DNA from: Macrostomum lignano
Taxonomy: Eukaryota
Assembly: GCA_002269645.1 (NCBI GenBank)
Contig: NIVC01000254.1
Span: forward strand, 124,001-188,000
Length of the DNA: 64,000 nt
Reading direction: 5' to 3'
Each line of letters begins with the position of its first letter. The first letter of the stretch is position 1. The notes beneath the pieces were generated by a model, which saw only the letters and a program-made list of their open reading frames with translations, was not told the DNA's origin and did no database searches. Position numbers and translations under genes: made by a program. Of this stretch, positions 6,558 through 47,215 are shown piece after piece.

Positions 6558-8095
6558 CTATTTAAAGGATATTTGAACAAGAAAAACATCGTTATAGCAG
6601 CAAAAAAGTTCTGCTAAAAGAATAAGCACATTGGATGATTGAAAATATGTTGAGCTACAACAGATACACTTCATATTAGAACTGCTACAACATTCTCCGC
6701 ACTGCAACTCGAGACCAAGCTGTTTGGAGTCGAATTCTCTAAGACACCGACCCATGCGGCTGAAAACTTCAGCAGAGCCCACAGCAGAGCTACACACGGT
6801 AAAAAATCCAAACCAATGGCAGTAACAAGCCGATCCGGGCAATCCATTAACTTGACTGTATCGCCGGTGCTTAAACTCATCCGGTGCACAGCTGATGGGG
6901 TGGCCAGAATGAAGCTGCGTCCTGAGACTGTCACACTACGAGCGTCCTTCACATGATCAGGCAGCTTCAAGCTCTGCTGCAGCTCAAGCGACTCCAGAGA
7001 GTGGCAGTTGACATAGCCGTCACTGAGAATGTACAGCTTCTCCATGTCATGCGTAAGACTCGGTTTCTCACCGAACTGCACATCCTGGACAGTTTGCAAC
7101 TTTGCACCCGTCAGGTCAGTCATGATTATAGACATAGACAGAATTTCTTCATCTTTGCCAAGCAGGAATATTCTCTTAATATGGTTTACAAGTCTTCCGG
7201 AAATTAATTTGATTCCGTTGTTTGGTATTTGCAATTGGCAGATTACATCATTCAAGTCCATGCTATCGATACGAAACCACCAATCATTCATAGTAAAGCC
7301 ATTGGCAACAGAAAGAATACAAGAATGAGGAAGGGCATAAAAACCATCCTGCAGTGTAGTGGATACTGATTGTTTAGAGCAAAATAATCCATCCGTATTA
7401 GTGATTACATCAGTGAAAATCCAATCAGAATCCGCACAACACTGCGTTCTCTTAGCTACGCACACTGCAGATTTCCATCTGCTCTGCAGATCGTCATCAG
7501 ATTCCTCAGCTTCAGCTGCAAGAGTATTTACCGCCTGTTGAAGTCTCTCTACCTGTTGCACACCGCGGTCAACAATATTGGCCCACGGATTTGTGTTTGG
7601 AGCATCTACCATTGACATATTAAACTCCTTTCTCAATCGAAAACTGCTCAATGCGTTTCCTTCAGCATCTGCAGCACTGATTTCAGCCGACAGTTGCTCC
7701 ACAGAGCTTAGAGATCTCAGACTCTGCTCCAAATCGGCGATCTTTGAGTCCAGTCTACCGATCACATTTTCTCTGCATTGTTTCACTCTCTCCATGATTG
7801 AATCGAACATGTCAGCTGCATCAGCCCTGTCACTTTCCAGATCAAACTGGGCCCCTCTGGTGTTTTTGATTAGCTGGGACACTTTGGCCAATGACTCATC
7901 GGTTTCTATTTTGATGGCGCTCAATTGCAGCTGGAACTGTTTCTCATCTTTCTTCAAGTGCTCAGCACACAGAGGACCTTCCCAGTAGAGCCCATGACCG
8001 GAAGCTTGACTGTAGCAACTCCTCAGGCTGCACTGCTTGTCCTGCTCAGAGGTTTCATCGTTCGGTAGATCGCTATGTGTGCTGCTAGTTGCCAT
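6558..8095 (-). CDS. Cluster gene A1: zinc motif - coiled coil - beta-propeller protein, with one apparent frameshift at an A6 run (~6801-6806)
   Basis: The family-equivalent start MATSST is at 8095. ORF 6671..8212 aligns with paralogs up to AIGLDF. The family-type C-terminus (…QCGECC…LVQISFK*) continues in ORF 6558..6842, and adding one T restores a single frame. Confidence 0.8.
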
Positions 8096-8329
8096 GGCAT
8101 GCATTAAAGAAAAGTGCATATCATAAACTGTGCTATCATAGGTAGCTAACTTTCCTCTACCATCTTTAAGTGTCGATGAGTTATTTGCTAAATTATATTC
8201 AGGGATTGCCAATACTTCAGTCTGTTCGATTCTATTTCAAATAAATACTATATCGCTGTATTGCTGGAATAGATGATGTCAACTAACCCAAATGAGACAT
8301 TGAAAACAAAAAATGGAAGTGCTTCCCAG

Positions 8330-9420
8330 CACGCCATGTAACAAAGACTGAGGATATTACGAGTACATTAGTATGGAAAAGATATTGCGAATAGCTCTAC
8401 AACTATTTGTAGTTAAACAAGACATCATTCAAAATATAGGAGGTAAAATGGTGTACCAGTTATAAGACATTAGAAAAGAGGAAGAAATCTTTTTGTCAGA
8501 AGTTAAAGCTACCATCAAAGAACTGAAGCAGAAAGAGGCACCAGGAGAAGACAACAGCAAGACATAACTCATTCAAGATGGTGGGGAAATCACAGCGAAA
8601 GTGCTGGACAACCTTTGCAACAAGAACCTGAAGACAAGAGTCGCCAAATTAGTTGGCAGAAAGTATTCCCATCATCACCATACCAAAAGACTAACAGTTC
8701 ATGTAGAACCATCAAGCTGTCAGTCACACGTCAAGTGATAATAAAAGTAATTTTGAAAAGGATCACACCCGAGATAGAAGTTCTAAGCGAGGGCCAAGCT
8801 GGGTTCAGAAGAAGATTCTTCTTCTCCTTGAGAATTCTAAGCAAGAAAGCAAGATAATGATAGCAGGAGGAGGGACGCGGAGAGTTTGTTGGTGAATGTG
8901 AAGGTTAATCGTGTACATTTGGAACACGTGTATGAGAAGCTTTACCTACCTTGGATCGGGAATAGAGAAGACAATGAAAAGTCAAACATGGAAATTCGGA
9001 TACGAATTGGAAGAGCTGCAAAGCGCTGGCAAAACTGGACAACATTGTATCGAGCAAGAAAACATTCACATGAAAAATAAAATTGATGCGATCGGTAGTA
9101 ATGGCAAATCTTCTTCGAATGATGATGAAGACCTACAGAAAAATGCCGTGCCAAGCATTTTCGGTGAAAGGAGGTGGAAGGCTGTGTAGGTCTGATCAAG
9201 AGAAGGAATTTCCGCTTCTTCGGGCATGTTGCGAAAAGCGATGGAGTAATTGATGGTGGTGTTAAGGGAAAAATGGGCAAAGCCAAGCCGCAAGGTGACT
9301 GGACAGGCAATCTGAAGGACTGGGGAGTGAACAGATGCTGCAGCTGAGCAAGATGGCCTTGGATCGAAGGAGGTGGAGAGTCGCTGTCAAGAAATGGGGT
9401 GCATCAACGACTATAATGAC
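8330..9420 (+). mobile_element. Decayed RTE-clade LINE reverse transcriptase fragment
   Basis: Broken motifs SEVKATIKELKQKEAPGED, EGQAGFRR and EIRIRIGRAAK, plus a 3' LDRRRWR-like end. Multiple stops and frameshifts. Confidence 0.75.
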
Positions 9421-9568
9421 CTGATGAGAAAAATAAACATACAAAGGTAAAATTGAGCTGGCTAGTAGGTACCCAGAGCGAATATATAAACTACCGGTAT
9501 ATGTTTACTAATCATTCAAATAACTAAGAACTAAGCAGTAAGGAACGTTTTAAAAGAGACAATTTTTT

Positions 9569-9583
9569 GTGACGTAATCCGCC
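9569..9583. promoter_or_regulatory. Conserved bZIP-type motif GTGACGTAATCCGCC upstream of A1
   Basis: The same motif, as GTGACGCAATCCGCC, occurs at equivalent positions upstream of other class A loci within otherwise diverged AT-rich DNA. Confidence 0.45.
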
Positions 9584-11089
9584 AGTTTATGTTGAGTTTT
9601 AGAAGAACACACATGAAAAACTTTATCATTTTTTCAAGTCGTATAGTTGGTTATTAAGTACAGGAAGTAACAAAACCTAACAAAAAGATACGCTGCATAC
9701 AATTGAAAGGCTAAATTTTTCGTGAGTAATTAATGTAAGATAAAGTGCAAAGTCATAACAAAAATTTACTTGAGCAAAAACAACTAAAATATATGCGCTA
9801 AATTTCCTGAAAAATGGCTAGCTATAAGATAGAATTTTTAATAGCTTTAATCAGAGCTAGTTTTGAGCTCCGAGTAGTATTGCAAAACATCAAACTTCGA
9901 TATCCCTATGAAGGCTTTTGCACAACACAACAATTAGACGGTTATTGTTTGCCTATAACAATTTCTGTCCTCTACACAAGGACCAAAGCTTTGGAATTCA
10001 CTTTATGTGCACCTTCTGTAGACTTGGGGGCCTGGGGGATTAGAGTGCTTGCTTGCACAAACGTAGGTACGTGAGATTAGGGAAATATGAAGGTGATCCT
10101 TAATATTAAGAAATTAAAACAATGGTGGAGTGCAAAATCAACAACCTTCAGATAAAACTTTCCCCAATGATTCATCACTTACTTGAGAACTTATAGATGG
10201 ATAAAAATAAAAAACTAGAAATTGCATGGCTCAAAACTTTGAGTTTACTACTCCAAAGTAGCCATTAACTATTACAATAAGTATTATAAAAAACATACCA
10301 AAGCTATATAATTTATTCATAATAAATTTAATTGAAAACGAGTATAAGTAAATAACTAGGTACATGTAATTCAAAAAAATAATAACGTAAACATATTGAG
10401 CTGTTTTCGACAGTAGAAAAGTAGAAACAAGCTGTAGCACTTCTCGATAAATTTAATTTATAAAAAATTGATAACGCCAACACCACAATGCTTCTATAAA
10501 AATACATTTGTGCATTGGTAACACTAAGATGGCACCGGAAATTAGACTGGTTTATTGAAAAAATACTTACGAATGAAAACTGCAAACAAAAAGTAGCTAT
10601 TCGTTCTCATGAACTGTATCAATCGGCTTTCATCATCGTTCGATCGAAACATTCATTGTTTTGTTTTTAATTATTAGCTCTATTTCATTCGAAAATCAAC
10701 TCATAAGGCAAACGCCTTATGCGACTAAAGAAAAGCAACAATGATACGCAATCCAAGATTTACACTGATGCCCACAGCCATAGAGGCACTGCTAGCCCAG
10801 ACCACGTACTGATCATTTAAAGTTTTTGAATCTTAATTTTCAAAATTGTCAAAAGAAAGCCTCATAGGAGCCTGACTTTATTAGACGATGAACAACAAAA
10901 TAAACACTTTTTTAGAATGGTGGTACTTACTTTTAGAAACACTATAAGAGCTTCATCGTCTATAGAAAATCAGCCGCATAAACTTTCTTAAAAAACAGAC
11001 AACTCGATATGTTGAAAACACGTCCTGTTCGTTTGAAAAATTAAAGCTAACAGAAAAACGCATCAGCTTAAAAAGTCATATGACGTTAC

Positions 11090-11998
11090 CTAGGAGATGC
11101 AGAGGCGCACTAAAACGCGATGGGTGCAGGACAAGCTGAGAAATAACAGCAAAGTGCTCGTCGACTCCCTGCTAAAACTGCAGCAACGAACCGACTCGAG
11201 GCGGTAATTTATACCACAGTTCTGGCAACGAGTGAAATAATTCGCACCTAACGACACCAACTCAATTACCTTAATCTCTCGTCCGTTGCCATCCAGAATT
11301 TTCACACTTCCATCACTATCGCACACAGCCAGAAATTCTGAGCAGAGTTCAGCTACACATCTAATATTCGAGCTACCGCTCTGATACAGCTTCGAGAATT
11401 GATGAGTTCTAAGACTCATCCGATATACTGCTGACGAGGTGGTGATGATCAAACTGCGGTTTCGATGCACGATGCTATGAGCCTCTTTAATATCATGCGA
11501 TATTTTTATCTTCGTCTGCAGCTCGCATGTTTCCAAGGACATGAACTGGACACCACTATGTCCGAGAATGTACAGCTTATCCATGTCGTGAGTCATGCCG
11601 AGTACACTTCCAAGCTGCACATGCTGAATAGTGCGAAGCTGAGTTCCCGCCAGATCAGTCACTGTCAAAGACTGGCTGCCATTGAGCAGGAAACACTGCT
11701 GCAGATGATTCACCAATTCGCCAGACGCAACTTCATACGGAGTGCTCCATCGACTGAGAAGAGCACCATCGAAATTGTAAACTGAAACGCATCTAGGATA
11801 CCTACTTGAATTGCAAAAGACGAATACACAAGCTCTTGGAAGGGCCTGAAATCCCGGCTGACACGTCTTAGAGAGCGACTGACCAGAGTAAAAGTATCCA
11901 TCAGTCTTGTAGCACAAACCGACGAAAGCAATTAATAATCTAACATCCATGTGGATGGCGGATAGACTTGGTTGGCACGTCTTAAATCTCTCTACCAT
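11090..11998 (-). CDS. Cluster gene B1: propeller-only class B member (302 aa; no zinc motif or coiled coil)
   Basis: Intact ATG-to-stop ORF. Its closest relative is 45692..47215 (CQNCG…SCTHRVLVRL vs CANCG…SCNHRVLVRV). It begins at about the coiled-coil/propeller boundary. Confidence 0.75.
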   Translation of the reverse strand: MVERFKTCQPSLSAIHMDVRLLIAFVGLCYKTDGYFYSGQSLSKTCQPGFQALPRACVFVFCNSSRYPRCVSVYNFDGALLSRWSTPYEVASGELVNHLQQCFLLNGSQSLTVTDLAGTQLRTIQHVQLGSVLGMTHDMDKLYILGHSGVQFMSLETCELQTKIKISHDIKEAHSIVHRNRSLIITTSSAVYRMSLRTHQFSKLYQSGSSNIRCVAELCSEFLAVCDSDGSVKILDGNGREIKVIELVSLGANYFTRCQNCGINYRLESVRCCSFSRESTSTLLLFLSLSCTHRVLVRLCIS

Positions 11999-12400
11999 GG
12001 CAATAGAAGAGCTTGAAAAAAATTAGACAAAATTTTTGTCGATTTTGTCAATTGTCTATTAGCGCGGATGCTAATTACGAGCTATAATAGATGGTACTAT
12101 GATATCTGGGACCACTAAGTATACTAACGTCCGTTGACAAGTGTGGCAATTGTTCACATAGTTGAAAACTAATTCCTCATTGATTATTTCTTCGTGAAAA
12201 GTTATAACCACGCGCTTAATATTACAATCACCTTGCAAGAAAAATTATGGGGTTTTATTGTAGGTGTTGCAATTAGCAACGTAAAGACATGCTCCTAGTC
12301 TTTGTTAATTTTAAACGGCGTCAGTAGTGAGCTTTTTCGAAATGATACCTTACTAGATTAAAGTAAAAGTCTCTTAAAAAACGGCACAACAGCGATTGGA

Positions 12401-13909
12401 TTAACCAATAGAAACGCGCCCAAGGAGTCGGTGTCCGCATGACATGTGCATAAGAAGAACGAAACAGCTTGTGGAATCTAAATAGGCTCCGCAGCAGATG
12501 ACAGAGTCACAGATGATATTATTGTATCTACTCCGTCCACACGCTTGACAATAGTTCACGTAGTTGAAACCATAGTCTGAAAGAGTGAAACTTCTCAACC
12601 GCTGCCCTGAGCTGCTCACAAAAACCACATTTCCATTAGTTTCGCAGACTGCAATAAATATAGAGCCAATAACAGCGATACAAAAGTTCTGACTGTCTAT
12701 CAGCTTCTTCACACCACCGGTGCCGATGTTTAATCGATGCACAGTTGATGGAGTAGCCAGAATTAAGCTGCGTCCTGAAGCTGTTACACTGCGAGCGTCC
12801 TTCACATGATCGGGCAGCGTCAAGCTCTGATGCAGCTCAAGCGACTCCAGAGAGAGGCAGTTCACGCAACCGTTGCTGAGAATGTACAGCTTCTCCATGT
12901 CATGAGTGAGGCTTATTGGAGCTTGGCACTGCACATTCTGGACACTTCGCAACTGGGTGCCAGTCAGGTCAGTCACAATTAGGGACTGATTGGTTCCAAG
13001 AAGAAATATCTGCTGAAGATGATCAACAAGTGTGCCTGAAGCTAGCTGCACTCCGTTGTTACCAACGTTCCACTGACTGATTATTTGCATGTCTGATCTA
13101 CAGACCATGAAAAACCAATACTGCGAATTATTAGCCACACAAAAAGTGCTTCCGCTAGGGAGAGCTTGAAATCCGTTTTGGTTTGTCTTCGTGACTGCTT
13201 GAGCTGAAAAATAGTATCCAGCAGTATTGCTACAAACAGCAGCAAGAAGATAGAATACATTGCTGGCCAAATTAGGAGACACCTTAACAGTGGGCACGGC
13301 AGACTCAAGTCTAGCTTTTAGTTTCTCACCGTCAGGATCCTCAGCCTCATCTGCGATAGTCTCAACAGCCTGTTGCAATCTCAGTACCTGGTGCACACTG
13401 TTGTCTACCGGATCGACAAACTCTTCTGATATCGGGGCATCCTCAAGCGAGATCTGGACCTCTTGATGCAGCCTGAATCCTTTAGTTGAAACACCTTTGG
13501 CTTCCTCCTCGCCGATATCGACCGAAAGTTTCTCTATGAAGCCGAGAGTTCTCAAGTTCTGCTCTACATTGTCTATTTTGGAGTCCAATCTGCTCATCAC
13601 ATTTTCTCTGCACTGCTGCAATCTCTGAAAGATTGCGTCAAACAGGTCAGCGGCCTCAGCTCTGTCGCTGGTCAGATCAAACAGAGCTCCCCTGTTTGCT
13701 TTCAACAGTTCATCTGTCTTCGATAATACCTCAGTGTTCTCTGATTTAACATCGGCGTATTTCTTTGCGAAAATCTTTTTATCTTTAGCGAGATGTCGCT
13801 CGCAGAGTTGCCCGCTCCAGTATATTCCAAGACCTGACGAAGGCTCTGTGCAATGCGTCATGGTGCACGTCTGTGCATCGGATTCTGCATCGACGCTATC
13901 GGTTGTCAT
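12401..13909 (-). CDS. Cluster gene A2: zinc motif - coiled coil - NHL-like beta-propeller (502 aa)
   Basis: Intact ORF with C15-x4-C-x15-C-x2-H, a heptad-rich helical region and blade motifs (VTDLTGTQLRSV, SSSGQRLRSF). A splice acceptor TTTTCTCTTTTCAG immediately precedes ctATG, indicating a 5'UTR intron. Confidence 0.9.
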   Translation of the reverse strand: MTTDSVDAESDAQTCTMTHCTEPSSGLGIYWSGQLCERHLAKDKKIFAKKYADVKSENTEVLSKTDELLKANRGALFDLTSDRAEAADLFDAIFQRLQQCRENVMSRLDSKIDNVEQNLRTLGFIEKLSVDIGEEEAKGVSTKGFRLHQEVQISLEDAPISEEFVDPVDNSVHQVLRLQQAVETIADEAEDPDGEKLKARLESAVPTVKVSPNLASNVFYLLAAVCSNTAGYYFSAQAVTKTNQNGFQALPSGSTFCVANNSQYWFFMVCRSDMQIISQWNVGNNGVQLASGTLVDHLQQIFLLGTNQSLIVTDLTGTQLRSVQNVQCQAPISLTHDMEKLYILSNGCVNCLSLESLELHQSLTLPDHVKDARSVTASGRSLILATPSTVHRLNIGTGGVKKLIDSQNFCIAVIGSIFIAVCETNGNVVFVSSSGQRLRSFTLSDYGFNYVNYCQACGRSRYNNIICDSVICCGAYLDSTSCFVLLMHMSCGHRLLGRVSIG

Positions 13910-14504
13910 AGCTGAAAAGAGAAAATATTAGCTACTGAGCATACGAGTAATACTAAAAATATATATAAAGACTAAATGCTAATCGCTGCTGAAGCTGTAA
14001 TAGAAGTGATTGTTGATAAAAAACGAATTGTCTATATATGCAAGCGCTTGGGCTTGCTACCATACCATGCTGTACTGCATCGGAACCTCTCATTGGTCAG
14101 TGCCTTCGGTTGGTATTGAGGTTGCACATATTTTTGCGTCTAGGAAAGCAAAAAAATAGTCATGATTTGATGGAAAGCATTGATTCGGTGTTGAGACGAT
14201 TAAGCTCCTCGGGAAGGGCTCAGTATTTCACAAAAATTCAGAGAGAGTTTTAGTAAATAAGATGCTTATAAATTGAAATTATCTAAAAATTTAGAAAGTA
14301 ATTAGCCTGACAGTTTTCATATCGTATAATCATGCGAATAATCACAGAAAGTGAAAATGAGTTACCTAGTACCTACCTAAAATGAGCTTACATAGATACT
14401 ATCCACCTAGCTCATATACTAAATATTTAAGATCTTTATGTTTACTAATATTCAAATAACTAAAAAATGGAGATAAAAACGTTTGAAAAATAAGAAACTT
14501 ATTT

Positions 14505-14519
14505 GTGACGCAATCCGCC
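14505..14519. promoter_or_regulatory. Conserved bZIP-type motif GTGACGCAATCCGCC upstream of A2
   Basis: Identical 15-mer at 27195 and 43385, with a one-mismatch copy at 9569. Confidence 0.45.
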
Positions 14520-15199
14520 GTTTATATTGTGGTTTAGAAAAACAAACTTAAAAACCTTGGAGACTGCGAAAGCATAGCAAAACTTACGAGTACTTGAGCA
14601 TGCAATGGCGGGTACAGCACGCCTGTGTAGCATGAGACAGACTAGGCCTACGGGCTAAGGTCTGCGATCCTACACACCTGCACCCCCTCTATTCTGGTGC
14701 AGGAATGGCAGGAGAACTCTCTCCAAGCTGACTCGCAAGCCGACCCAGGGGTTCACGCCCCGCATGTGTTCAAGGCAGCTCTAGGGCTGCTGGACTGACT
14801 GGGCTCCGGCGGCGGCAACCCATCCGTGGCCTGTTGGCCAAGTTGGGTACGGGCTCCGCCCGGAAGTGCACCTGTGCGTATCAGGTACCTCTGGCCACGG
14901 CTCTGAGGAACAGGTACCACCCTCTGACCTTAACAGGGTATGCGGCCAGCCGCAGGCTCCGGAGGCAGTCCTCCTGCTTCCCTCAAGGACCCAGTGTAGT
15001 ACCGTGCTGATGGTCCTTTGGTTCGGTCTCTGGTTTTTCCAAGCCGGGCTCTTAGCCGGGGAGTTTCTCGGTTGCTAGCGGTCGGGCCGGTACGGGCTTA
15101 AGCCACCCCCCGGTCGCTACCTCTTGGCCTGGTTGTTGGGTTTGGGGTTACGGCCCAGCGGCTTCTCACCTTTAGTCCCCACTCGCCTTTCAGCGACTC

Positions 15200-16662
15200 A
15201 TGGAGTATTCACTTACCTCCGACACGTCCGAGGCTGCTGGAGCACCAACCGAGGTTGGCACCGCGGCCCAGCCGGACATTCGCAACACCGGAACCCCCGG
15301 TGCCTCTCAATCTGCCGCTGCCGCCGCTCAGGATAATACCGGAGTGGCTGGACAAGACAGCGGACCTCAGATTTCAAAAAGAAGGCCCGTAGCATTGCTC
15401 GCTACAAAGCCTTTCTCCAGCGCAAAGCGGAGGAACGGAGGAATGCGAAAGCCGCCCCCCGGCCACCTCTGAGGAGGGTGCCGGTAACTCTGCGAACCCC
15501 GCGGAGGAGCCGACATCCGACAAGGGGGTGGACCCCGCGCGCCGGTCTGATGCGTCAGGTGCCGCCGAAGCTCCTGGTGCGGCTGGCCCCTCCCGTGACC
15601 GGACCTCTGCCCGTGTGGAAGCTCCCACGGCCGTGGAGGGATCCAAAGCGGGGGGCGCTGGCCAAACCACAAAGCCGAAGCGAACCTACGCGGCTATGGC
15701 CAAAAGGCAGCCGGCCCTGGTTATCCAAGGCCAGGAGACGCCTCTTACGGCCGAACAGCTCGACCTTATCTGGCGCAGGTTGGACTCCCACCTGGTCAAG
15801 ATGGCCTTGAGCGGCACTACCATTCGAGTCCAAAAGACGAAAGTCGAGGACCAAGCCCTCTATATCCAGCCCACCGACAGCCAGTCAGGACAGCAGCTCC
15901 TCGAGCTGCTGAAAACCTTCGACTGGGGCACGGAGCTGGAGAACCTGTTCATCTACAGGGAGGACGAGCGACCCCGGACACACCGGCACCGTGCCTGGAT
16001 CCCGGCTCGCAGCTGCATCACCAAGGCCGACGAGCTGCGTCACCTGCTAGTGGCTTCCAACCCGGAGCTACCGGCCAACGGTGTCGTAGTTCACGAGACC
16101 ATCTCCAAGCCAGGCGGAGACGGTTTCACGGCTATTCTTGGACTGTCGGATAGCTGGATGCTCCGCTACCCGGACATGTCCATCATCTCTGTCGGGCTGT
16201 TGCAGATTCAGCTCTTTAGCTTTGAGTCTGACGCCACCCGCCCACCGCCCCGGAGAAGCGTAAGCGGGCAGTCGGGGGCTCTGCCGGGCGGAAACGCCCA
16301 GGAAAAGAAGCTCCCGGCCGTCACGACCCCTCCGAGGACGTGGACCCTATCAGAGGGAAAGCCGCGAAAGCTGCAGCAACAGGCGGACGTGGGAAGGGCC
16401 GGAAACCCGCCCGGAACACTATCCGCTCTGGTCTGACTCAGCGCGCGAAACAGCTGCTGGACACCGCCAAGGCCCCCAACCGCAGCCACCACCAGCCCAG
16501 TGTCACCACTGCGGCCCCCCAGGAAAACCGGGCCGAGAGCGAGAATGCCGCCCAGGTAGCGACCCCGCCCTCGACCATGGAATCCATCCGGGAGGAGCCC
16601 ATGGAGCTGGAGCCTGGAGCTATCGGCGAGGCAGAAGAGGCAGCTCTCCTGCACAACTCGCC

Positions 16663-16666
<4 letters not shown>
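15200..16666 (+). CDS. LINE ORF1 (split by about three single-base frameshifts)
   Basis: ATG at 15200. Overlapping ORFs 15200..15472, 15528..16436 and 16340..16666 chain into one low-complexity/basic ORF1 upstream of ORF2. Confidence 0.7.
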
Positions 16667-20409
<3,743 letters not shown>

Positions 20410-36200: not shown

Positions 36201-36954
36201 AAATTACTCAAATCACTGTTTTAAAATTCTATCACAGCATGTTCTATAACATTCGATAGCTTGGCCACAGCGGGAAATATGGTTTAGAATCAAAAGCACC
36301 ACAATTAAGCGCCAACTAACTTATCACGCAAATTTTCTTAGACAGAATACTGAAGGGGCCACAACAATACAAACTAATTCCAAGAAAAAGTAATAACTTA
36401 GATGTACAGCTCGTCAAAAATCAAACTGAACTGCAAACAAGCAAACTCTAAAGTGCAAATAAAACGGAAGATTTTTAACTTATTTTATAAATTTTTTGCA
36501 TAAACATAAATTTGACTAAGCAAACATAAACTTTAGTAGACTTGCAGATACAGAAATAACTTCATATTTTACTTTCAAGACCATACTATCACTAAAAACC
36601 AGCCAAAGCAATACAGTGAGTGACATCTCCGGTGGATATTAGTGACTGCTTTTCAGAAAATACTCGTACAAAAAAATACGGAAAAACTGCTTTGAGTTTT
36701 GAGTTTTTAGTAAAATACACTGAACTTCAGATTATTTATGATCGATGGGCACGTCAAAAAAAGTCGAGGGTTGAAACCGCTTAACCACAGCTATGTATAA
36801 TACTATATTAAAACAGCCAACAAACAAAAACTGTTTGTTCATATAAACTTAAATTATGCTCTTTCTTTCCGATAGATTTTAAACATTGTCATTAGTTAAC
36901 TTATTCCAGATGATATCTTGCAATGAGTAGCAGTATCTGAAACGAGGTAACAGC

Positions 36955-37170
36955 TCAATATTCACCAACAGAAACGCGCCCAAGGAGTCGGTGACAAAAT
37001 GGCATCTGCACAATAACAACGAAACAGCTTCTGGAATTTAAATAGGCTCCGAAGCCGATAATATAGTAGGTGACAGTATTCATACTACACTCTGCACCAG
37101 CTTGACTATTGTGATTCAATTTAAAACCAGAGTTTGACAGAGTGAAACTTTTTAACTGCTGCCCTGAGAC
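36955..37170 (-). pseudogene. Class A C-terminal remnant
   Basis: SGQQLKSFTLSNSGF…GAYLNSRSCFVV…CHRLLGRVSVGEY* matches the class A last blade. The CxxC motif is lost. Confidence 0.75.
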
Positions 37171-38185
37171 ATTCTCAGCTGGTCTGCCCATGAGGTTTGC
37201 CCATTATGTAAGCTTGATACGAAAAATCGGACATATTTGCAACAGAATGTTCATAGTCACTTGGTGTAACCTGTTGAAGGTGCCGACGGCGTCCGGGTGT
37301 TGACGGAATGCTCAAGAGACTAGCTGAGGATGTCCAGCAGTTGATTCTTGCCCGCTGTCGAGGCTTGATCAGTGAATCTAGAGAAATTCTAATCAGGCTG
37401 TCCATAGTCACCTGGTGTCATCTGTTGAAGGTCCAGAAGCTCCGCCTGGGTGAAGGCTAGTGACCAACAAAGACAGAGCTAATGCAGACACATGTGGTCG
37501 ACGTGCTGTTGAAATTTGGAGACTTGGCAAGGCTGCACTGAGGCGCAGTGCTGATTGGCGCACAGGGGTGTACTGAATACACTAGCGCTTATGGGAAAAA
37601 TCCGACCTTCAGGTAGAATCGTCGAATATCTCGACGGTCCGGAGGGCTGGCGACTTGATTCTTGTTTGAGAATGTGCGCAACAAAAAGTTAGTCCGTGTT
37701 CTTGAATTTCGTGTGCCTGCGTTGCTTCGTTCGGCGCAGCAAAAAAATTGTCTTTGATTTCCCCCCCCCCTCTTGGTAGTTCTACTGTTAATTGGTCTTC
37801 AGTTCACTTTAGAATCAATCAATGCAATACAGTAGCCATTGGCGAAAGTCTGCTGGCGTAGTGACAACTTACATTATGTTAAAACGCATTTCCGATAAAT
37901 ACATTTATATGATTTAAATCCTGACCAACATATCAAAAAGAAGACGCCGTTTGAGAACAAATGACCGGAAAACATCTTAAGATCTTAAAAATCTCAAAAC
38001 ATCTCAAAAATTGCAAGCAAAATTGTGGGGTTTTATTGTACGCTCGTAGATGTTGCAGTTAGCTTCATCTATAAAGCTACTTGTCTTCGATAAATTTTAA
38101 ACTGCGTCGTTAGTTAGCTTTTTCGAAATGATACCTTACTAGAGTAAAGTAAAAGTCTGAACAAAACTGCATAACAGCGACTGGA

Positions 38186-39533
38186 TTAACCAATAGAAAC
38201 GCGCCCAAGGAGTCGGTGTCCGCATGACATGTGCACAAGAAGAACGAAACAGCTTGTGGAATCTAAGTAGGCACCGCTGCAGACTATAGATTGCCAGGTG
38301 GTATTGTAATTGTTCTGTCGACAAGTTTGGCAATAGTTTACGTAGTTGAAACCCGAGTTTGTCAGACTGAAACTTTTCAACCGCTGCCCTGAGCTGCTCA
38401 CAAAAACAGCATTTCCATTAGTTTCGAACACTGCAATCAATCCAGAGTCAATGACAGCGACACAAAAGTTTTGACTGTCCATCAGCTTTATCACACCACC
38501 GGTGCAGATGTTTAATCGATGTACAGCTGATGGGGTGGACAGTATTAAGCCGCGTCTTGAAACTGCTACACTCCGAGCGTCCTTCAAATGATCAGGCAGC
38601 TTCAAGCTCTGCTGCAGCACAAGCGACCCCAGAGAGAGGCAGTTCACGCAACCGTTGCTAAGAATGTACAGCTTCTTCATGTCATGAGTGAGGCGTAGTG
38701 GAGGTTGGAACTGCACATTATGGACACTTCGCAACTGGGCGCCACTCAGGTTAGTCTGAATTAGGGACCGATTGGTTCCAAGAAGAAATATCTGCTGAAG
38801 ATGATCGACAAGAGTACCTGAAGCTAGCTGCACTCCGTTGCTACCAACGTTCCACTGACTGATTATTTGCATGTCTGAATTACAGACCATGAAAAACCAA
38901 TACTGCTTAGCCACACAAAAAGTGCTTCCGCTAGGGAGAGCTTGAAATCCGTTTTGGTGAAAAATGACCATGACAAACAGCAATATATTCATACGACACA
39001 AAAAAGTGCTTCCGCTAGGCTTTTAGATTCTTGTTTTTTGAGACTGCTTGCCTGATGAGAAACAGTCTACCATCGAGTATTGTTTCTGATATCGGGGCAT
39101 CTTCAAGCGAGATCTGGACCGCTTGATGCAGCCTGAATCCTTTAGTTGAAACACCTTTGGCTTCCTCCTCGCCGATCTCGACCGAAAGTTTCTCTATGAA
39201 GCAGAGCTCTCAAGTTCTGCTCCACATTGTCTATTTTAGAGTCCAATCTGCTCATCACATTTTCTCTGCACTGCTGCAATCTCTGAAATTCAGCGGCCTC
39301 AGCTCTGTCGCTGGTCAGATCAAACAGAGCAACCCTGTTTGCTTTTAACAGTTCATCTGTCTTCGACAATACCTCAGTGTTTTTTGAAATCGGCGTATCT
39401 CTTTGTAAAAATCTTCTCATCTTTAACGAGACGCAGAGTAGCCCGCTCCAGAATTTGCCGAGACCGGACGAGGGTTCCGTGCAACGCGTCATGGTGCACG
39501 TCTGTGCATGGGATTCTGCATTTCAGTTGCCAT
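38186..39533 (-). pseudogene. Class A pseudogene A5 (frameshifted 5' part, internal deletion/rearrangement ~38955-39090, intact propeller half)
   Basis: 38186-38955 encodes a clean propeller half. 39090-39533 carries the N-terminus with several small deletions. ACACAAAAAGTGCTTCCGCTAGG is duplicated at the junction. Confidence 0.85.
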
Positions 39534-39749
39534 AGCTAAAAAGAGAAATAATAAACATAGTATTAGCTATTAAACATATGAGAAATACAATATTGTCTTG
39601 ATAGAAGATACACCGGTTGTGCCAACAGAGAACTCTGTATATTATTTGCAGATAGCTGCTCTTCGTAGCAGTACAATGTCATTAGAAACAGAGAGAAGCT
39701 AGAAGGAAGATAGCTCAGAGGCAATACAGCAATTGGACTTTATTGGCTC

Positions 39750-41165
39750 CAAGGCGTATTCAGCATACCAGTGAGGTATGAGACAAGCTAGGTCTGTGGG
39801 CTAAGGTTGGCGATGCTGCGCCCATCTCAGTGAAATATGCGGTCAGAGCCGCAGTCACCTCGCCTCAGCTCTGTCGCTGTCCTAGTGAAAGGGCTAGCGC
39901 TTTTGGGCTTTACCCGGCTGTGGCTTAGGAACTTGGCTACTGGCCGCCACTTAACGTACTCTACCCATGCCTAAGGTGTTGACAGGGCAGATGGGCTGGA
40001 AGGCCGGGGAGTAGTCCGGTTGCTAGCGGTCTTTTTTGTCAAACCGGCTGGCTTAGGAGAGTCGGCTACTCGGGTACTCAACTTGCGTAACGAGTAGCCG
40101 TCCTCCCGCTTTTAAGCTATAGCCACAACGCCAAACTGACCCGATCGCCCCTGGCCCACCGCGATCAGCTGCTTTGGCAGCTACTCCTCGCCGACCATGA
40201 GGGTTTTCGACAGGGACAGCGACCTGACGCCTGAGCAACCCGACATCGCGTAGACCATTGACGAGGGCCTATTAAAAGGTGCCTTCGTGGACATCGCGAA
40301 GTACACCAAGACAAACGGGTGCATCCTCCTGTGGTGCATATCCGAGGAGAGCCCCCAACTCCTGCGGGCAAAAGTTCGGCTGGCACAGCGACCCGGGTCA
40401 GCTGACTTTCCCCTTGGAGAGGGAGCGGCCCTAAATCATCCATCATCGGATTTGGATCCGGACGCCAGCGCGATTAAGTCCAGGCAGCTTCTGCTCACGC
40501 GGCACCCGGATCCTGACGCCAGTGGTCTTGTATACTACAACACGGTCCGCAAGGGCACGACCAGGGCCACCGTCATCTTCGGACCAAATGGCTCGACCCT
40601 CAACTTGGTCTCCATCAACTGATCATCCTTTGCTGAGGAGGACAAGATGGAAGTCAAGAATGTCAGGAAGCGCACTGCAACCGCAAGGGGAGCTGGGGCT
40701 CAGGCTTCGCCGGCCAAGCAACATCAACCAGACCCAGAGCCTAATAGGGCAATCCGCGCTGCTGAGTCTGCCTCGGGTGAACGTAGACCTGCCCGTAGAA
40801 GCCGACGGTCCGGGCTAATTCAGCGCGTCCTTATCAAAGCTTAGTCCCCGAGACTTCACCTCGAGCGGACTCGTGCCGCTCGTCAAACTGCTCAAAGCCA
40901 GCCAAAGGAACTGGACGATGGCACGGCACGGCTCGGCCATCCAACTAGTGGGATTGCCACCAGGATGCTGCCGACCGAGTCTAGACTCCTGACGGTGGGG
41001 CGCAAGGCGAGGGCAGCAGCCATACTTCAGTCGCTGGAGAGTAAGGCGGTGCAGAGCGGCCAGGTCTCACCTGCCGCGGGCGCCGCGTACACCACGGCGG
41101 CTGGGGAGGCGGCTGAGCCCAAGCCAATGGAAATAGGCAACTCAACCTTTAACGATGTGTAGTAT
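39750..41165 (+). mobile_element. 5' portion (5'UTR plus decayed ORF1) of a LINE related to 14598-20503
   Basis: 5'UTR matches (GGGCTAAGGTyyGCGAT; CGGTTGCTAGCGGTC). ORF1-like LLLTRHPDPDASGLVYYNTV…TVIFG parallels LLVASNPELPANGVVVHET…TAILG. No ORF2. Confidence 0.6.
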
Positions 41166-42732
41166 CACACCCGCCTTATAAAGTGTTCGATGGAAAATAA
41201 AGTCCGAGGATGCGTTTTCATCAGGCCAAGGCTTCACCATTCTACGAGTACTTTCTACCATAGAACATTTTATGTGCAGGTGATGAAATTAATTCTCCAG
41301 TTTTTATATCGAGGGTGTAGAGACAGGGCTATAAATAATATTTTTCTTATCTTCGCCATAGAAAAAATCTCTAGAGAACTTATAATGGGTACATATAGAT
41401 TAAGCTGTTTATTAGACCAACTAGGACAGGAGACAAAGAGATGGATTTGCCTGAACTTGGATTTAAGTTGATCGATGCTTTGTTTGCATCCACCACTACT
41501 GCATCTACGATTACAGTTATTCTAGCTGTTGCTGACTCTGACGACACTGTTCGGGCATCAGCATCTAGACGTTTTGCAGTCGTGTCTTTTGACGACATCC
41601 TACGAAAGTTAAATGCTTCTATTCCCGACACGCAAGACGCAAAAAGGAACTGGCGCTCAATCTATTCAACCGATGACGAGACGAGGGACAAACAAGCATT
41701 CCCTCTGATGAGAGGAATGACCTGATGGTGACAAAGCCTATGAAGAATTGGAGGTCCTGGAGGCTGGAATTTTTTTGTTAAGTCTTCGTCTTTGAAGTTC
41801 GTAAGAAAGACGGCAGCCAAAACAACGTTTCAACACTGAAGGACTGTGTTTGCAATGCTTCAACACCACTGCGCATCAGCTGAAAATAAATGTTTCGTTA
41901 TGGAAGGACCCGCAATTTGTGAAGACAAGACGGACCTAGGATTGCTTCCATGAAGACCGTCTGCAAAGGAAACATACCCGGAATGCATGCCAGCGAGCCT
42001 ATCCCAGCTGCTTTGGAACACGAATTGTGGCAACGAGGACCGTTAGGGACTGAAAATCCAAAATAGCTTTTGAACACGCTAGTGTTTACATTGGCAAGTG
42101 CTTCGCCCTCCGGTTTGAACTGAACTCTACAGCTTACACTACGATAAAGACATTGTAGTTGAAATTGACGCGAATGGAGAAGCGCTCGTTTTCAAGGAAA
42201 ACAAAGCCAACAAGACTAATAATTGTGGAATGAAGGCTAAGAAAAGCTTTCCACCACGAGAAAGCTTTTCTAAAGGCTTTATTCCAAAGGCTATATTTGG
42301 CTGTATTCTTGTTACTTGTAGAGAACAGAGATTCTATCCAGATGTCCCCCATCGTGGGGCGAAGATTGCTAGTCTCGTACTAATATGCTAAATTCTAAAT
42401 GCTAAGCGCTAATGAAGCTGCGCTATGGACCAGATATAATTAAGTAACAAATTAACTACTTTTTTAAATTCAACTACAAGACTGCTTAATGCATAAAATT
42501 TTAAGTTCATCAAGTACGAGCGTAAATATTTTAAAGTATTGGCGTTTATAGCGACGTCTTGAAAATTAGATTTTTCTAGTCATTAAGTCAGTGCCAATAA
42601 ATAATTTATTACTTTAAATGAAAAGTAACTAGTTAGTATAAAAAGAGTATAACGATTGAAATAACACACCTAAGTATGGAGAGAATGCACCAAAAATATG
42701 CACAATATAGTACATGATTATTGCTTTGAACT

Positions 42733-42829
42733 CGCTCCAAAATTTGCCGAGAACGGATGAAGGCTCTGTGCAACGCGTCATGGTGCACGTCTGTGCATCG
42801 GATTCTGCATCGACGCTTTTATTTGCCAT
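42733..42829 (-). pseudogene. Class A 5' stub A6 (first ~32 codons)
   Basis: MANKSVDAESDAQTCTMTRCTEPSSVLGKFWS, after which homology stops. The upstream acceptor and spacer are conserved with A2/A3. Confidence 0.85.
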
Positions 42830-44073
42830 AGCTGAAAAGAGAAAATATTAGCTAGTAAATACACGAGTAATACCAAAAGTATATATTAATTCGTACTAAA
42901 TGCTAATTGCTACTAAAGCTGTCATAGGACTGATCGTTTATAAAAAGCGAATTTTATATATATGCAATAATGGCTTGCTACCATACCATGCTGTACTGCA
43001 TCGAAACTTCTCATTGTTCAGTGCCTTAGGTTGGTATTGAGGTTGTACATAGTTTTGCGTCTAAAGCAAAAAAATTAGTCATGATTTGATGGAAATCATT
43101 GATTTTGTGTTAAGACGTTTAAGCTCCTCAGGAAGGGCTCGGTATTTCACTAAAATCCAGAAAAAGTTTTAACAAATTAGATGCTTATAAATGGAAAATA
43201 TAAAAAATTTAGGAAGTCATTATCGGACAGTTCTATTTTTGTATAATCATGATAATAAGCATAAAAAGTGAAAATCAGTTACCTAGTAGCTACCCAGAGC
43301 TGAGATACAAAATAATATGCTTATAATTATTCGAATAACTAAAAACTGGCGTCAAAAACATTTGAAAAATGAGAAACTTTATTTGTGACGCAATCCGCCA
43401 GTTTATGTTGTGGTTTAGAAAAACCAACTTAAAAAACTTCGGCAAAAATTATAGTAAGTAACATAAAATAACAAAAAGATACATGCGGTGAATACGATCG
43501 AAAGGCAACATTTTTTATGACAAATATACAAGCTAGACTGGGGAATCATAACTTTCGAGTACTGGAACAAAACAACAACAAAAATTAGGCTAGCTAAAAA
43601 AATTAATTTTAATCCTATATACTAAAAATCGGTGCTAAATTTCAGCCCTGGATATTACAAATTTACGCTCGTAGGGTAAGCGAGATTTCAGTAATATGAA
43701 TTTTATGAGATCATAAATTTGACATCGGTAAGTCAGGCGATTTTACAAGTTGAAAAGTTATGGAGTGTAAAGGCAACAACCTTTAGACAAAAAAGGTACC
43801 TACTTGCATTGTTTAGGAATCTAACAAAACTTTCCCCATGACTTATCACTTAGTTGAGTACTTTAACAGGTCTTTATTGAGAGATATGAAATTGACAAAA
43901 ATTACAAGTTATATGGCTCAAAACTCTGGGTTTACTCGTACTGCTCAAAAGTAGCCAATAACTATTACAATTATTTTTTATAAAAAAATAACTATGGAAA
44001 AAATAACTAAAATAACTTAAAGATGTGAAGACTTCTAGAACAAAGCTATATATTTATGCATATCTATACGCCC

Positions 44074-44430
44074 TAGAGGGGGCCGTAGCCCAGCGGTAGC
44101 GAAGGCTCTGGTGTGCCAGCGACCCAGGCTCGATTCCCAGTGCAGTCACATTAATTTGGGGCTGAATTGGAATCTCGGCTTGGCTCTGCTCGTGCAATTA
44201 ACGGCCTTGAGAGCCAACCCCCAAGGCGCAGTGAAGTGTACATGCCTAACAATTGATAAAGTTAGGGCCGCTGTACACTCCTGTGTGAGTGTGTGCCTGC
44301 GTACGTATCCGCGCGCTTGTATGCCTGCTCAGGGGAGTCGGCGGAATGGGCAGTAATGCCTCTCGCCGGTTGTGTGCCTATGTCGCTTAATGTGCGCCAG
44401 GGTGCACACACCCCTGCCTCTAATAAAAAA
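44074..44430 (+). mobile_element. tRNA-derived SINE, family 2
   Basis: A-box-like GTAGCCCAGCGG, B-box-like GGCTCGATTCC, AATAAAAAAA tail. TSD ATCTATACGYCC at 44062-44073 and 44431-44442; the empty site is visible at 21157 and 27867. Confidence 0.88.
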
Positions 44431-44817
44431 ATCTATACGTCCATATAGAAAACGATTCTAGACAACTGGGTACTTAAAATATTGGCATAAACATAAAAAA
44501 AGTTTCCGACAGTAGTAAAGTAGAAAAAGCTGTAAGCATGTCTTAGTGAATACTTTCGGAAAATTTCGGGAATGACAACACCATGCACATTGCTAGTATA
44601 AAAGTACGTTTCACATTCGTAACACTAAGATGGCAGCGGACATTGGGTTAGCTGATTTATCGTAAATAAGAGTGGGAAACAAAAATACGATTGTACATAT
44701 TAAAAAACCCAAACACCAATCGTCTTCTTCTGTTCTAAATTGGACAGCTCAATTTAAAAAAGCATTAGCGCTATACAGAAAGGCTAGCTACAATGAGATG
44801 GAATCTAATTTTTATAC

Positions 44818-45247
44818 CAGGGTTTTTTACCACAATTAGTACCCCATGAGGTATTAGTCAACTGATTTGGGGTACTATTTTGCCCATTAATACCCCAGAA
44901 AAGGGTACTAATTTTTATCGAGTTCAATTGAAACAAGTTAAGCTTTTTTAAATTAGCAATTTAATTAAAATTCTGGCTGGCCCGGTATGGGTCTTGTATA
45001 TCCAGGCACCTGTGTGGTGAGTCAGACTGTCAGGCTAAAAGTAAGAGAGGGTTGGAAACTTGGAATATATTTGTCAGTCTCGCTCAACCCAACTCTCAGC
45101 CCCAAGGACTGGCTCAGCCTTGGGGTGGGTGGGCCCAAGGCCCTGCAGAATTAGAAATTTCGTGGGGTATTACTCCTCCAAAATGGGGTACTACTTAGAG
45201 GCTTGATACCCCAATTCGGGTACTAATCAGCAGTGAAAAAAGCACTG
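44818..45247. mobile_element. hAT-type MITE
   Basis: TIR CAGGGTTTTTTAC / GTGAAAAAAGCACTG, 8-bp TSD (T/G)TTTATAC, subterminal GGGTAC repeats. Absent from the homologous spacers. Confidence 0.8.
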
Positions 45248-45691
45248 GTTTATACTAAGTAGCATAAGCTTTATACTCATGCACAGTCAGTAGAGTGGCC
45301 AAGGTCATGAGGGACTTAGAGTCCTGACAGGGTCCTGACAGAAAAGCTGATAGGAACATGACTTTTGAATAGTCAGTGAACAACGCAAGTTTTTATAAGC
45401 TTATAGAAACACTGGAGTTGTATGGACTATAGAAATTCCTATTGATTTTATTTATCCCGCCATTCAGCTACGAGTATACCGACTGTCTCAACACAAAGCA
45501 AAGACGTCAAACTAGAAATGTATTATGACACTCCCTATCATGGAATAAGTTCAAAACTCGGTAGCTCAGTTTTAAAAACTCACTTTAAAGTTTGAGTCTT
45601 AGTAGAGCTGAGTGACTTCGTTAACAGGGAAAAGATGTGCTGTATTGAATAGAAAGATATGCTTCTAAATAAATCGGTTTCGGTTATAGCA

Positions 45692-47215
45692 CTAGCAGAT
45701 CGACACTCGCACTAAAACGCGATGGTTGCACGACAAGCTGCATATCAGCAGAAAGGAGCTCGAAGATTCTCGGCTGGCGCCACAGGAGCTAATTGACTGC
45801 AGAACATACGATACACCACAGTTAGCACACGTCTTGAGATAGTTTACGCCTAGTGGCACCAGATCAATCACTTTAATCAGTTGTCTGTTGCTGCTAAGAA
45901 GTGCAACGCTGCCATTATTTTCGCAGGCAGCCAGAAATCCAGATCCAATGTCTACAACGCACAGCACATTTTGACTATTGCTCTGCCAGACTTTTACGCA
46001 TCTTTTCGTGCCGAGACTCATTCGATACACTGCTGACTGGGTGGCCAGTATTAAACTACGACCAGAAACTGTCATATGACGAACATTCGCAGTGTCTTTC
46101 GAGAGTTTCATGCTATCCTGAAGTTCGCAAGTGTCCAGCGACAGGCAGTTTATGCAGCCATCACCGAGAATGTACAGCTTCTCCATATCGTTGACTATGA
46201 TCGGCATTTCAGCTTGAAACTGGACATTGTCAATAGTTCGAAGCTGTGTACCAGCTAGGTCCGTCACAATCAAAGAATTGTTATTACCAAGCATATAGAT
46301 TTGTTGCTGGTGATTCACAAGAGCTGCAGACACTAATACAACATTGTTCGATGGCTGATTTCTTTGGCTAAGTACCACGAGTTCGTTGCTATAGAAAGCG
46401 ATATGCCAGTTCGCACCATAGTTACCTACTGCAAGTACGCAGGAGCTTGGCAAAGCCTGAAAGCCATTCTGTTGCGTCTTGGAAACCAGCTGAGCGGAGT
46501 AAAAAAATCCATCCGTACGATTGCAGTTGAAAACGAATTGGATGTAGTTTGTAAGAAGAACCTTGGCAGTTGGCACAGCTGACTCCAGCAAAGATCGCAT
46601 TGCTGCCCCGTCTGCATCCTCGGCAATTGCAGCTCGAGTCTTTGTCTCCTGCAGCAGCTTCTGGACCAGTTCAACGCTGCTGTCAACTGGATCAGTCCAA
46701 GCATCGGAAATGGGAGCATCTTCAAGTGCGAGTTGCATCTTCTTGCTCAACTGGAAACTTTTAACAAGATCGCCAGACATTTCAGTCCCGTTGATATCTG
46801 CTCGAAGCTTTTCAAAGAAGTGCAACGACTTCAGACTGGCGTCCATGCTGTCGATCTTGGCGTCCAGCCTGCCAATGACGGTACTGCGGCAGCGCTGGAC
46901 AATCTCGAGAATCTCTTCAAACATGTCTGACGCATTGGCTCGGTCGCTGGTCAGCTCGAACAAAGCGCCGCGCGTCAAGTCCATCTGCTCGGCAACGCGG
47001 CGCATTGCACCATCGATGTTCGCCTGACGATAAGAGTAGTAGCTCTCTCGGAATCGGTCGGCGTCTCGCTTCAGATGGGCGGCGCACAAGGGCCCGTCCC
47101 AGTGGCTGCCCTGACCAGCAGCGTCTTGGCCACAGTTAGGCAGACTGCAAACATCGTGCTGCTGCTTGTTGTCGCCTTGCTGCTTTCCTGACGTTGCTTT
47201 TTTGGCAGAAGACAT
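45692..47215 (-). CDS. Cluster gene B4: full-length class B member (507 aa)
   Basis: Intact ORF with C-x4-C-x15-C-x2-H, coiled coil, propeller blades and CANC…SCNH. Confidence 0.9.
   Translation of the reverse strand: MSSAKKATSGKQQGDNKQQHDVCSLPNCGQDAAGQGSHWDGPLCAAHLKRDADRFRESYYSYRQANIDGAMRRVAEQMDLTRGALFELTSDRANASDMFEEILEIVQRCRSTVIGRLDAKIDSMDASLKSLHFFEKLRADINGTEMSGDLVKSFQLSKKMQLALEDAPISDAWTDPVDSSVELVQKLLQETKTRAAIAEDADGAAMRSLLESAVPTAKVLLTNYIQFVFNCNRTDGFFYSAQLVSKTQQNGFQALPSSCVLAVGNYGANWHIAFYSNELVVLSQRNQPSNNVVLVSAALVNHQQQIYMLGNNNSLIVTDLAGTQLRTIDNVQFQAEMPIIVNDMEKLYILGDGCINCLSLDTCELQDSMKLSKDTANVRHMTVSGRSLILATQSAVYRMSLGTKRCVKVWQSNSQNVLCVVDIGSGFLAACENNGSVALLSSNRQLIKVIDLVPLGVNYLKTCANCGVSYVLQSISSCGASRESSSSFLLICSLSCNHRVLVRVSIC

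Follow-up and report, generated by a model that had tools for sequence, protein, structure and literature searches.

TRIM-NHL-like genes of Macrostomum lignano in a probable birth-and-death tandem array with half-genes that are probably deletion remnants

We analysed a 64,000-nucleotide stretch of the Macrostomum lignano genome (the window; NIVC01000254.1, positions 124001-188000) that carries a cluster of paralogous genes of two classes, A and B, several of which are truncated. A gene of this family has one coding exon of about 505 codons, specifying an N-terminal Cys/His motif, a long coiled coil, a linker and a C-terminal propeller, and the A and B classes are paralogues sharing about 40-44% identity. 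The layout was defined by self-BLAST, tblastn and spacer coverage. All open reading frames (ORFs) named in a preliminary description of this sequence are present on the minus strand, and the ORF list and tblastn place every family locus on that strand in head-to-tail order. Truncated B loci hold either the N-terminal part of the gene (N-only) or the end of the linker and the propeller (C-only). The cluster comprises the following features, in window coordinates:

6671-8212, minus strand: A0, an old A-class paralogue (ATG at 8095, 474 aa)
8213-11089, minus strand: B1-A0 spacer, with patchy homology to the other spacers
11090-11998, minus strand: B1 C-only remnant (linker end and propeller), annotated as a 302-aa gene
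12401-13909, minus strand: A1, an intact A-class gene (502 aa) with a polypyrimidine-AG acceptor 2 nt before its ATG
13910-14597, minus strand: B2-A1 spacer, part adjoining A1
14598-20503, plus strand: long interspersed nuclear element (LINE) retrotransposon within the B2-A1 spacer, with endonuclease and reverse transcriptase
20504-21860, minus strand: B2-A1 spacer, part adjoining B2, homologous to sequence 3′ of B4
21861-22298, minus strand: B2 N-only remnant (145 aa)
22542-24822, strand not assigned: non-autonomous inverted-repeat element between A2 and B2, with a second copy at 29251-31514
25086-26603, minus strand: A2, an intact ORF (505 aa) whose AG acceptor before the ATG is mutated; without annotation
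26604-28572, minus strand: B3-A2 spacer
28573-29010, minus strand: B3 N-only remnant (annotated gene of 145 aa), a tandem copy of B2
31777-33291, minus strand: A3 (504 aa), exon 2 of the annotated gene Mlig017959g3
36846-37168, minus strand: isolated 3′ fragment of an A-class gene
38011-39588, minus strand: A4, a decayed pseudogene
42670-42829, minus strand: exon 1 of Mlig017959g3, a duplicated 32-codon A 5′ fragment plus 21 unrelated codons
42830-45691, minus strand: B4-A4 spacer, holding a 354-bp repeat (44078-44431)
45692-47215, minus strand: B4, an intact B-class gene (507 aa)

Self-BLAST shows that the centre of the cluster is a tandem duplication, in which 20562-26692 is repeated as 27269-33376 (6.1 kb, 96.1% identity, period 6,707 bp), and a third partial unit pairs 12274-14579 with 24963-27269 (92.4%). 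The preliminary description had reported four repeats of one arrangement, a class A locus linked by a common spacer to a class B slot that holds a propeller-only (B1), an N-only (B2 and B3) or a full-length (B4) product. These slot contents are confirmed, but B2 and B3 do not count as independent cases: both lie inside the same tandem duplication and are therefore one event counted twice. No B slot lies upstream of A3, and the A partner of B4 is a pseudogene, with an extra stretch of about 3.1 kb between the spacer and A4.

M. lignano is a neopolyploid, and its Mlig_3_7 assembly holds three diverged copies (S, L1 and L2) for about 70% of its length (PMC10733133), with a single-nucleotide-polymorphism divergence of about 2% between subgenome copies (PMC10733133). 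The same assembly is reported to be chimeric over 36% of its scaffold length, and variants in it are often collapsed or expanded (PMC10733133). We compared the window with two sister scaffolds, NIVC01000829.1 and NIVC01000293.1 (122171-142431). NIVC01000829.1 carries the same cluster; its stretch 29846-43544 (13.7 kb) was left out, so that copy numbers given for this scaffold are lower bounds.

The comparison shows how B1 lost its N-terminal half. On NIVC01000829.1, B1 has an uninterrupted frame of 505 aa. The window copy lacks 2,808 bp (equivalent to L002 11589-14396 on NIVC01000829.1), with a clean junction at 11999-12001 marked by GCC microhomology, and its ORF uses a methionine inside the full-length gene as its start. 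Collinear sequence with 93-97% identity to the sister scaffold flanks the deletion. Since the sister gene is full length, the propeller-only B1 is the product of a recent deletion private to the window scaffold.

The N-only copies have a different and older origin. In both B2 and B3, codons 1-138 of a B1-type gene are joined to sequence lying about 70 bp beyond the stop of a B4-type gene, followed by a B4-type spacer. Homology to intact B1 is confined to the interval between -32 and +418 of the ATG; within it, the first approximately 139 codons of intact B1 are about 94% identical in DNA to B2 and B3. Because these copies group with B1 in a tree of the N-terminal half (99% bootstrap) and share only 34-37% amino-acid identity with B4 (tblastn), they are N-terminal parts of a B1-type gene and not pieces of B4. 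We also considered that B2 and B3 might be nonsense-truncated copies of B4, and rejected this origin, as the sequence after their stop is B4-type 3′ flank and not B coding sequence. Likewise rejected was the idea that the 2.2 kb upstream of intact B1 is the A-to-B intergenic segment of the tandem unit; the two sequences are unrelated. The window holds two N-only units and NIVC01000829.1 at least three, and the same junction is present in all six copies found across the three scaffolds, which differ from one another by substitutions. The N-only form is thus the result of one old illegitimate-recombination or deletion event that was copied later. Each of the three truncated loci, B1, B2 and B3, shows both a truncation relative to an intact paralogue and a deletion junction, as expected of pseudogene fragments.

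Evolutionary rates point to relaxed constraint on the N-only copies. Compared with each other, they give a ratio of non-synonymous to synonymous substitution rates (dN/dS) of 0.84-1.3, from 3 synonymous and 9-14 non-synonymous differences. The corresponding values are 0.10-0.28 for codons 1-140 of intact A paralogues and 0.29 for B4 copies over the whole gene. In binomial tests a dN/dS of 0.2 is rejected for the N-only copies (P = 0.0008-0.006) and a dN/dS of 1 fits, with small counts and non-independent comparisons. Disabling mutations accompany these rates: the N-only copy on NIVC01000293.1 carries a stop and a frameshift, one on NIVC01000829.1 carries Q85* and a 3-nt insertion, and the AG acceptor beside the ATG is lost in B2, B3 and the three N-only copies of NIVC01000829.1. 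Relaxed constraint and disabling mutations, the combination that characterizes pseudogene fragments, are thus both found, on small substitution counts. Moreover, an A copy with W31* on NIVC01000829.1 has been tandemly duplicated together with its N-only neighbour (period 6,820 bp). As this broken A copy was itself duplicated, amplification proceeds regardless of coding integrity.

The spacers that link B to A carry an older signal. Those of B2-A1 and B3-A2 align over 2007 of 2015 bases at 94.8% identity, and each of them aligns with the B4 spacer at about 80% identity across some 87% of its length. The B1-A0 spacer shares only 342-652 of its 1651 bases (21-39% of length) with the others, at 71-78% identity; shuffled sequences align over 0-17 bases. 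Neighbour-joining trees with 200 bootstraps, built separately for the two halves of the protein, group A0 with A1-4 (88%) and B1 with B4 (91%) in the propeller half. In the N-terminal half, A1-4 form a clade with 100% support, B1, B2 and B3 form the clade noted above, and the position of A0 is not settled. The B-A pairing is also kept on the sister-subgenome scaffolds. The fourfold A-spacer-B linkage accordingly holds as a layout, with spacer homology far above the shuffled controls, subject to two reservations: the B1-A0 spacer is only patchily homologous and the A4 partner is dead. The ancestral two-gene module proposed in the preliminary description, in the order B-spacer-A, is borne out by the propeller trees, by some homology among all four spacers and by the persistence of the pairing in other genome copies, which together support an old duplication of the module. 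The spacer itself is probably conserved because it was copied along with the genes and because it carries the 5′ exon or promoter region of the A genes. Nothing indicates that it functionally couples the two partners, and Rfam and tRNA scans of the spacers found no RNA gene.

Decay and exchange also mark the A genes. Compared with an intact 503-aa A4 on a sister scaffold, the window A4 shows 14 or more deletions, of 2-46 bp, as well as frameshifts. In A0, a 1-bp deletion within a T-run near 6807 shifts the frame of the C terminus (the last approximately 45 residues) relative to a 512-aa sister copy; since a homopolymer surrounds this indel, a PacBio assembly or sequencing error may be its cause. 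Synonymous divergence (dS) between A2 and A3 falls from 0.30 in codons 1-140 to 0.06 over the propeller half, and this sharp difference between halves suggests gene conversion or unequal exchange within A coding regions. In sliding windows over the A paralogues, the ratio of non-synonymous to synonymous differences (pN/pS) is 0.13-0.31 in the motif and coiled coil, about 0.8-1.0 in the linker and 0.4-1.75 in the propeller. The faster evolution of the propeller is suggestive and no demonstration of positive selection, the values above 1 coming from windows with very low pS. On NIVC01000293.1 (122171-142431), a unit of N-only B, spacer and A gene stands directly before the segment that follows A4 in the window (37928-34549), and this different unit order indicates that the array was rearranged between subgenomes. 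Different members are broken on different subgenome copies, which is a signature of birth-and-death evolution.

A further event private to the window is the LINE that splits the B2-A1 spacer. It is 5.9 kb long and near full-length, has an (AAGTC)n-like 3′ tail and is flanked by a 13-bp target-site duplication (TACGAGTACTTGA) at 14585-14597 and 20504-20516. The corresponding site is empty on NIVC01000829.1, so the insertion is probably recent. A second copy of the 3′ end of this element lies at 61786-61937 (93.6%).

Gene models in M. lignano are based solely on transcripts (PMC5730564). Annotated genes correspond to B3 (145 aa), the B1 fragment (302 aa), B4 and, as Mlig017959g3, A3; A1, A2 and B2 are not on record as annotated genes, with exact-product look-ups made for A2 and B2. 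When 42829-42670 and 33293-31777 are spliced together, with removal of a GT-AG intron of 9,376 nt, the product matches Mlig017959g3 (P0002) exactly; the acceptor of this intron lies 2 nt upstream of the A3 ATG, and the splice skips the A4 pseudogene. On a sister scaffold, exon 1 at the end of the B4 spacer splices onto intact A4. Since P0002 consists of exon 1 and exon 2, there is evidently a used 5′ exon at the A-proximal end of the B4 spacer. A polypyrimidine-AG acceptor precedes the ATG by 2 nt in A1, A3, A4′ and B1′ (primes denote sister-scaffold copies) and by 17 nt in B4. The annotated B4 mRNA has its 5′ end at 47230, directly after an AG acceptor, a start that is compatible with spliced-leader trans-splicing.

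The proteins belong to a family with a narrow distribution. B4 is 99% identical to BOX15_Mlig017959g1 of M. lignano, and family members are annotated only as "hypothetical protein". No relatives outside M. lignano were found among 1.8 billion representative proteins, and a profile search of a 5.8-billion-protein set returned only six close clusters, all from M. lignano. Literature searches for the transcript names and for TRIM or NHL proteins in Macrostomum gave no match. About 22 residues from the N terminus begins a C-x4-C-x15-C-x2-H motif that is conserved even in the most distant paralogues and probably binds zinc. Pfam finds no significant domain in full-length family proteins and neither a RING finger nor an immune-receptor domain, and zf-B_box does not match the N-terminal 56-64 residues even at E values up to 10. 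The absence of a RING does not by itself exclude TRIM-NHL kinship, because some members, Brat among them, also lack one.

An AlphaFold2 model of B4 built from a 13-sequence alignment reached a mean predicted local distance difference test (pLDDT) score of 74; a single-sequence run gave only 37. The model contains a continuous helix at residues 45-147 with return helices to about residue 211 (pLDDT 62-83), followed by a beta-propeller at 214-505 (pLDDT 85-90). The helix of about 100 residues with its return helices looks like a TRIM-type coiled coil and would be expected to dimerize; in the model it follows the Cys/His region, as a TRIM-NHL protein requires. Foldseek searches of the PDB with the model retrieved only generic WD40-type propellers, which are not diagnostic, and a profile of the cluster proteins alone had no NHL match among PDB sequences. 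The connection runs through a distant M. lignano subfamily (P0009-P0018). The cluster family aligns with this subfamily at an hhalign probability of 99.1% (E = 6e-19, 418 columns), and the subfamily in turn matches the NHL domains of Thin, TRIM2, TRIM71, TRIM3 and Brat (E = 1.5e-10 to 6e-5), with a Pfam NHL score of 16.9 bits, under the 20-bit cut-off. The description that fits the family best is that of a RING-less, strongly diverged TRIM-NHL-like lineage whose propeller would descend from NHL by transitive homology. With Brat, Thin/TRIM32, TRIM2/3 and TRIM71/LIN-41 it shares the order of Cys/His motif, long coiled coil and beta-propeller, and with Brat (Drosophila Brain tumor) also the lack of a RING. 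Unlike those proteins, the cluster proteins have no Pfam B-box or NHL match, and their motif has four ligands (C-x4-C-x15-C-x2-H) where a B-box has eight. The family differs further in being restricted to M. lignano, encoded by a single exon and tandemly amplified.

Taken together, these observations make it very probable that the cluster is a birth-and-death tandem array of an M. lignano-restricted TRIM-NHL-like family in which the half-genes are deletion remnants. In the proposed history, B and A would originally have stood head-to-tail about 2-3 kb apart, and long ago the pair would have been duplicated to give B4-A4 and B1-A0. Illegitimate recombination or deletion would then have fused some 138 initial B1-type codons to the sequence flanking a B4-type gene on its 3′ side, with a B4-type spacer and an A4-type A gene downstream. 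Unequal crossing-over would next have amplified the resulting 6.7-kb unit of A gene, inverted-repeat element, N-only B and spacer, with the N-only fragment as a passenger. After the recent whole-genome multiplication, each subgenome copy would have accumulated its own damage: in the window a 2.8-kb deletion of the 5′ half of B1, the LINE insertion, the decay of A4 and possibly the A0 frameshift; on the sister scaffold, nonsense mutations in one A copy and one N-only copy. The truncated B loci, as judged by these patterns, are remnants without detectable protein-level constraint, though some are probably transcribed.

Several observations weigh against this reading. Transcription of B3 and of the B1 fragment is likely, because both are gene models in a transcript-only annotation; the preliminary description had held that half-genes without transcripts would speak against a function, and for these two that objection does not arise. 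The 145-codon frame is kept in four of the six N-only copies, as is expected by chance at a dS of about 0.03. The last 302 codons of intact B1 and window B1 give a dN/dS of 0.26 (dS 0.069), a constrained value that mostly reflects history before the deletion. The dN/dS estimates for the N-only copies come from few substitutions and take A paralogues as their baseline, as only one intact B1-type gene is available, and a value near 1 is formally compatible both with neutrality and with a mixture of constraint and diversifying selection. Finally, the single-base indels and the private B1 deletion rest on a PacBio draft assembly with the chimeric share given above.

That last point leads to the possibility that the truncated and additional copies were created artificially by a draft assembly mixing three near-identical subgenomes. 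Chimeric scaffolds and collapsed or expanded variants are frequent in Mlig_3_7 (PMC10733133), the A0 frameshift sits in a T-homopolymer and many A4 lesions are small deletions; yet an identical N-only junction recurs in six substitution-differing copies on three scaffolds, the B1 loss is a clean 2,808 bp with microhomology in collinear sequence, and the LINE has a proper target-site duplication, so that artefact is an extremely improbable explanation of the whole. The preliminary description had favoured a functional one, in which N-only and C-only products would serve the A proteins beside them as free sensors, decoys or dominant-negative oligomerization partners. The halves are indeed complementary and derive from one gene type (residues 1-138 in the N-only form, 204-505 of B1 in the C-only form), the N-only form would keep most of the long helix, the presumed counterpart of the dimer interface of TRIM proteins, B3 and the B1 fragment are annotated from transcripts, and the pN/pS of A-paralogue propellers is raised, as expected of a recognition surface. 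Against these points, the N-only copies evolve at a dN/dS of about 1, compared with about 0.2 for the same region of intact genes, other N-only copies carry stops and frameshifts, and the start-proximal acceptor is lost. The C-only form exists on the window scaffold only, through a recent microhomology deletion, and, being private and recent, does not co-occur with the N-only form as a conserved set. Complementarity stands as a description, but the two halves arose by separate deletions, and we consider roles as decoys, dominant negatives or free sensors very unlikely. The suggested resemblance to paired sensor and helper receptors is not sustained either: all genes lie head-to-tail on one strand, immune-receptor domains are absent, and the partners are not maintained by selection.

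A related and also quite unlikely idea is that the family is a fast-evolving RING-less TRIM-NHL offshoot with its propeller under diversifying selection, in which the transcribed 145-aa coiled-coil fragments, multiplied along with every unit, would titrate or modulate the dimerization of full-length A and B. If true, it would mean a decoy layer arising from gene wreckage, with propeller roles in, for example, virus or transposon defence or reproductive conflict. Somewhat less improbable, though still doubtful, is that B and A are co-transcribed as a polycistronic unit, with the spacer as shared precursor RNA, and resolved by spliced-leader trans-splicing at the AG acceptors. Multi-gene precursors make up about 7% of M. 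lignano transcriptional units (PMC5730564), all genes of the cluster lie on one strand with acceptors near the ATG in A1, A3, A4′, B1′ and B4, and the annotated B4 mRNA starts exactly after an AG. The B4-type and A3 gene models also share the prefix Mlig017959, and the annotated exon that occupies the A-proximal end of the B4 spacer is joined to A3 by splicing. However, the shared prefix reflects cd-hit clustering of transcripts (PMC5730564) and is no proof of one RNA, the 2-3 kb spacers contain transposon insertions that include the 5.9-kb LINE, and even real co-transcription would leave the B copies truncated. Compared with known spliced-leader multi-gene units of this species (PMC5730564), the cluster is similar in its same-strand neighbours, AG acceptors before starts and an mRNA 5′ end at an acceptor, and dissimilar in its kilobase-long, transposon-interrupted spacers.

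Birth-and-death clusters are among the known systems close to the array. They share with it tandem segmental duplicates, copy number that varies between genome copies, transposon insertions, mosaic divergence suggestive of gene conversion, and truncated or nonsense members beside intact ones. Lineage-specific TRIM expansions in vertebrates are an example of birth-and-death clusters with pseudogene fragments. As in those expansions, the recognition domain here evolves faster than the coiled coil; unlike them, the M. lignano array belongs to another phylum and has a propeller instead of B30.2, and it gives no sign of an immune role and no statistical proof of positive selection. Plant sensor/helper pairs of nucleotide-binding leucine-rich-repeat (LRR) receptors share with the cluster only the repeated adjacency of two paralogous genes. 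Those pairs lie head-to-head with a shared promoter and the genes here head-to-tail; the cluster has no nucleotide-binding domain, LRR or integrated decoy, and its reduced partners are decaying.

Read as a birth-and-death array, the cluster illustrates that a striking pattern of complementary half-genes can arise from two unrelated deletions and tandem copying, and that in a neopolyploid old structure can be told apart from recent damage by comparison of the subgenome copies. It opens no new mechanism beyond ordinary gene birth and death. The new item is a modest one, an unnamed M. lignano-restricted family linked to TRIM-NHL by profile comparison, whose unstable tandem arrays and faster-evolving propeller may interest researchers working on flatworm gene families or on TRIM-NHL proteins.

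Other features lie in and around the cluster. The elements at 22542-24822 and 29251-31514 are about 2.3 kb long and have imperfect inverted terminal repeats of about 290 bp and no long ORF; they look like non-autonomous DNA transposons and make up most of the interval from A to the next B in each tandem unit. The 354-bp repeat in the B4 spacer (44078-44431) recurs inverted, at 95.6% identity, at 50670-51030, and resembles a miniature transposon. This second copy lies inside an AKAP17A-like multi-exon gene (48892-53707, minus strand) that flanks the cluster, with the Pfam domain RBD_AKAP-17A in ORFs 51239-51778 and 53255-53707; the gene adjoins B4 on two sister scaffolds too. Rfam gives a weak tRNA match at 48104-48173 (plus strand; 33.8 bits, E = 0.003), which ARAGORN fails to confirm. 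The match partly coincides with the repeat 48135-48364, which recurs as 52857-53071 (87%), and it may be a tRNA-derived short interspersed nuclear element. One minisatellite occupies 557-1242 (36 copies of a 19-bp unit) and another 53881-54972 (38 copies of a 29-bp unit), just beyond the end of the last AKAP17A-like ORF at 53707. Towards the end of the window, an ORF at 62786-63277 (plus strand) with an integrase core (rve, E = 4e-13) represents a retrotransposon fragment and adjoins an AT-rich stretch at 54-62 kb (GC 30-36%).

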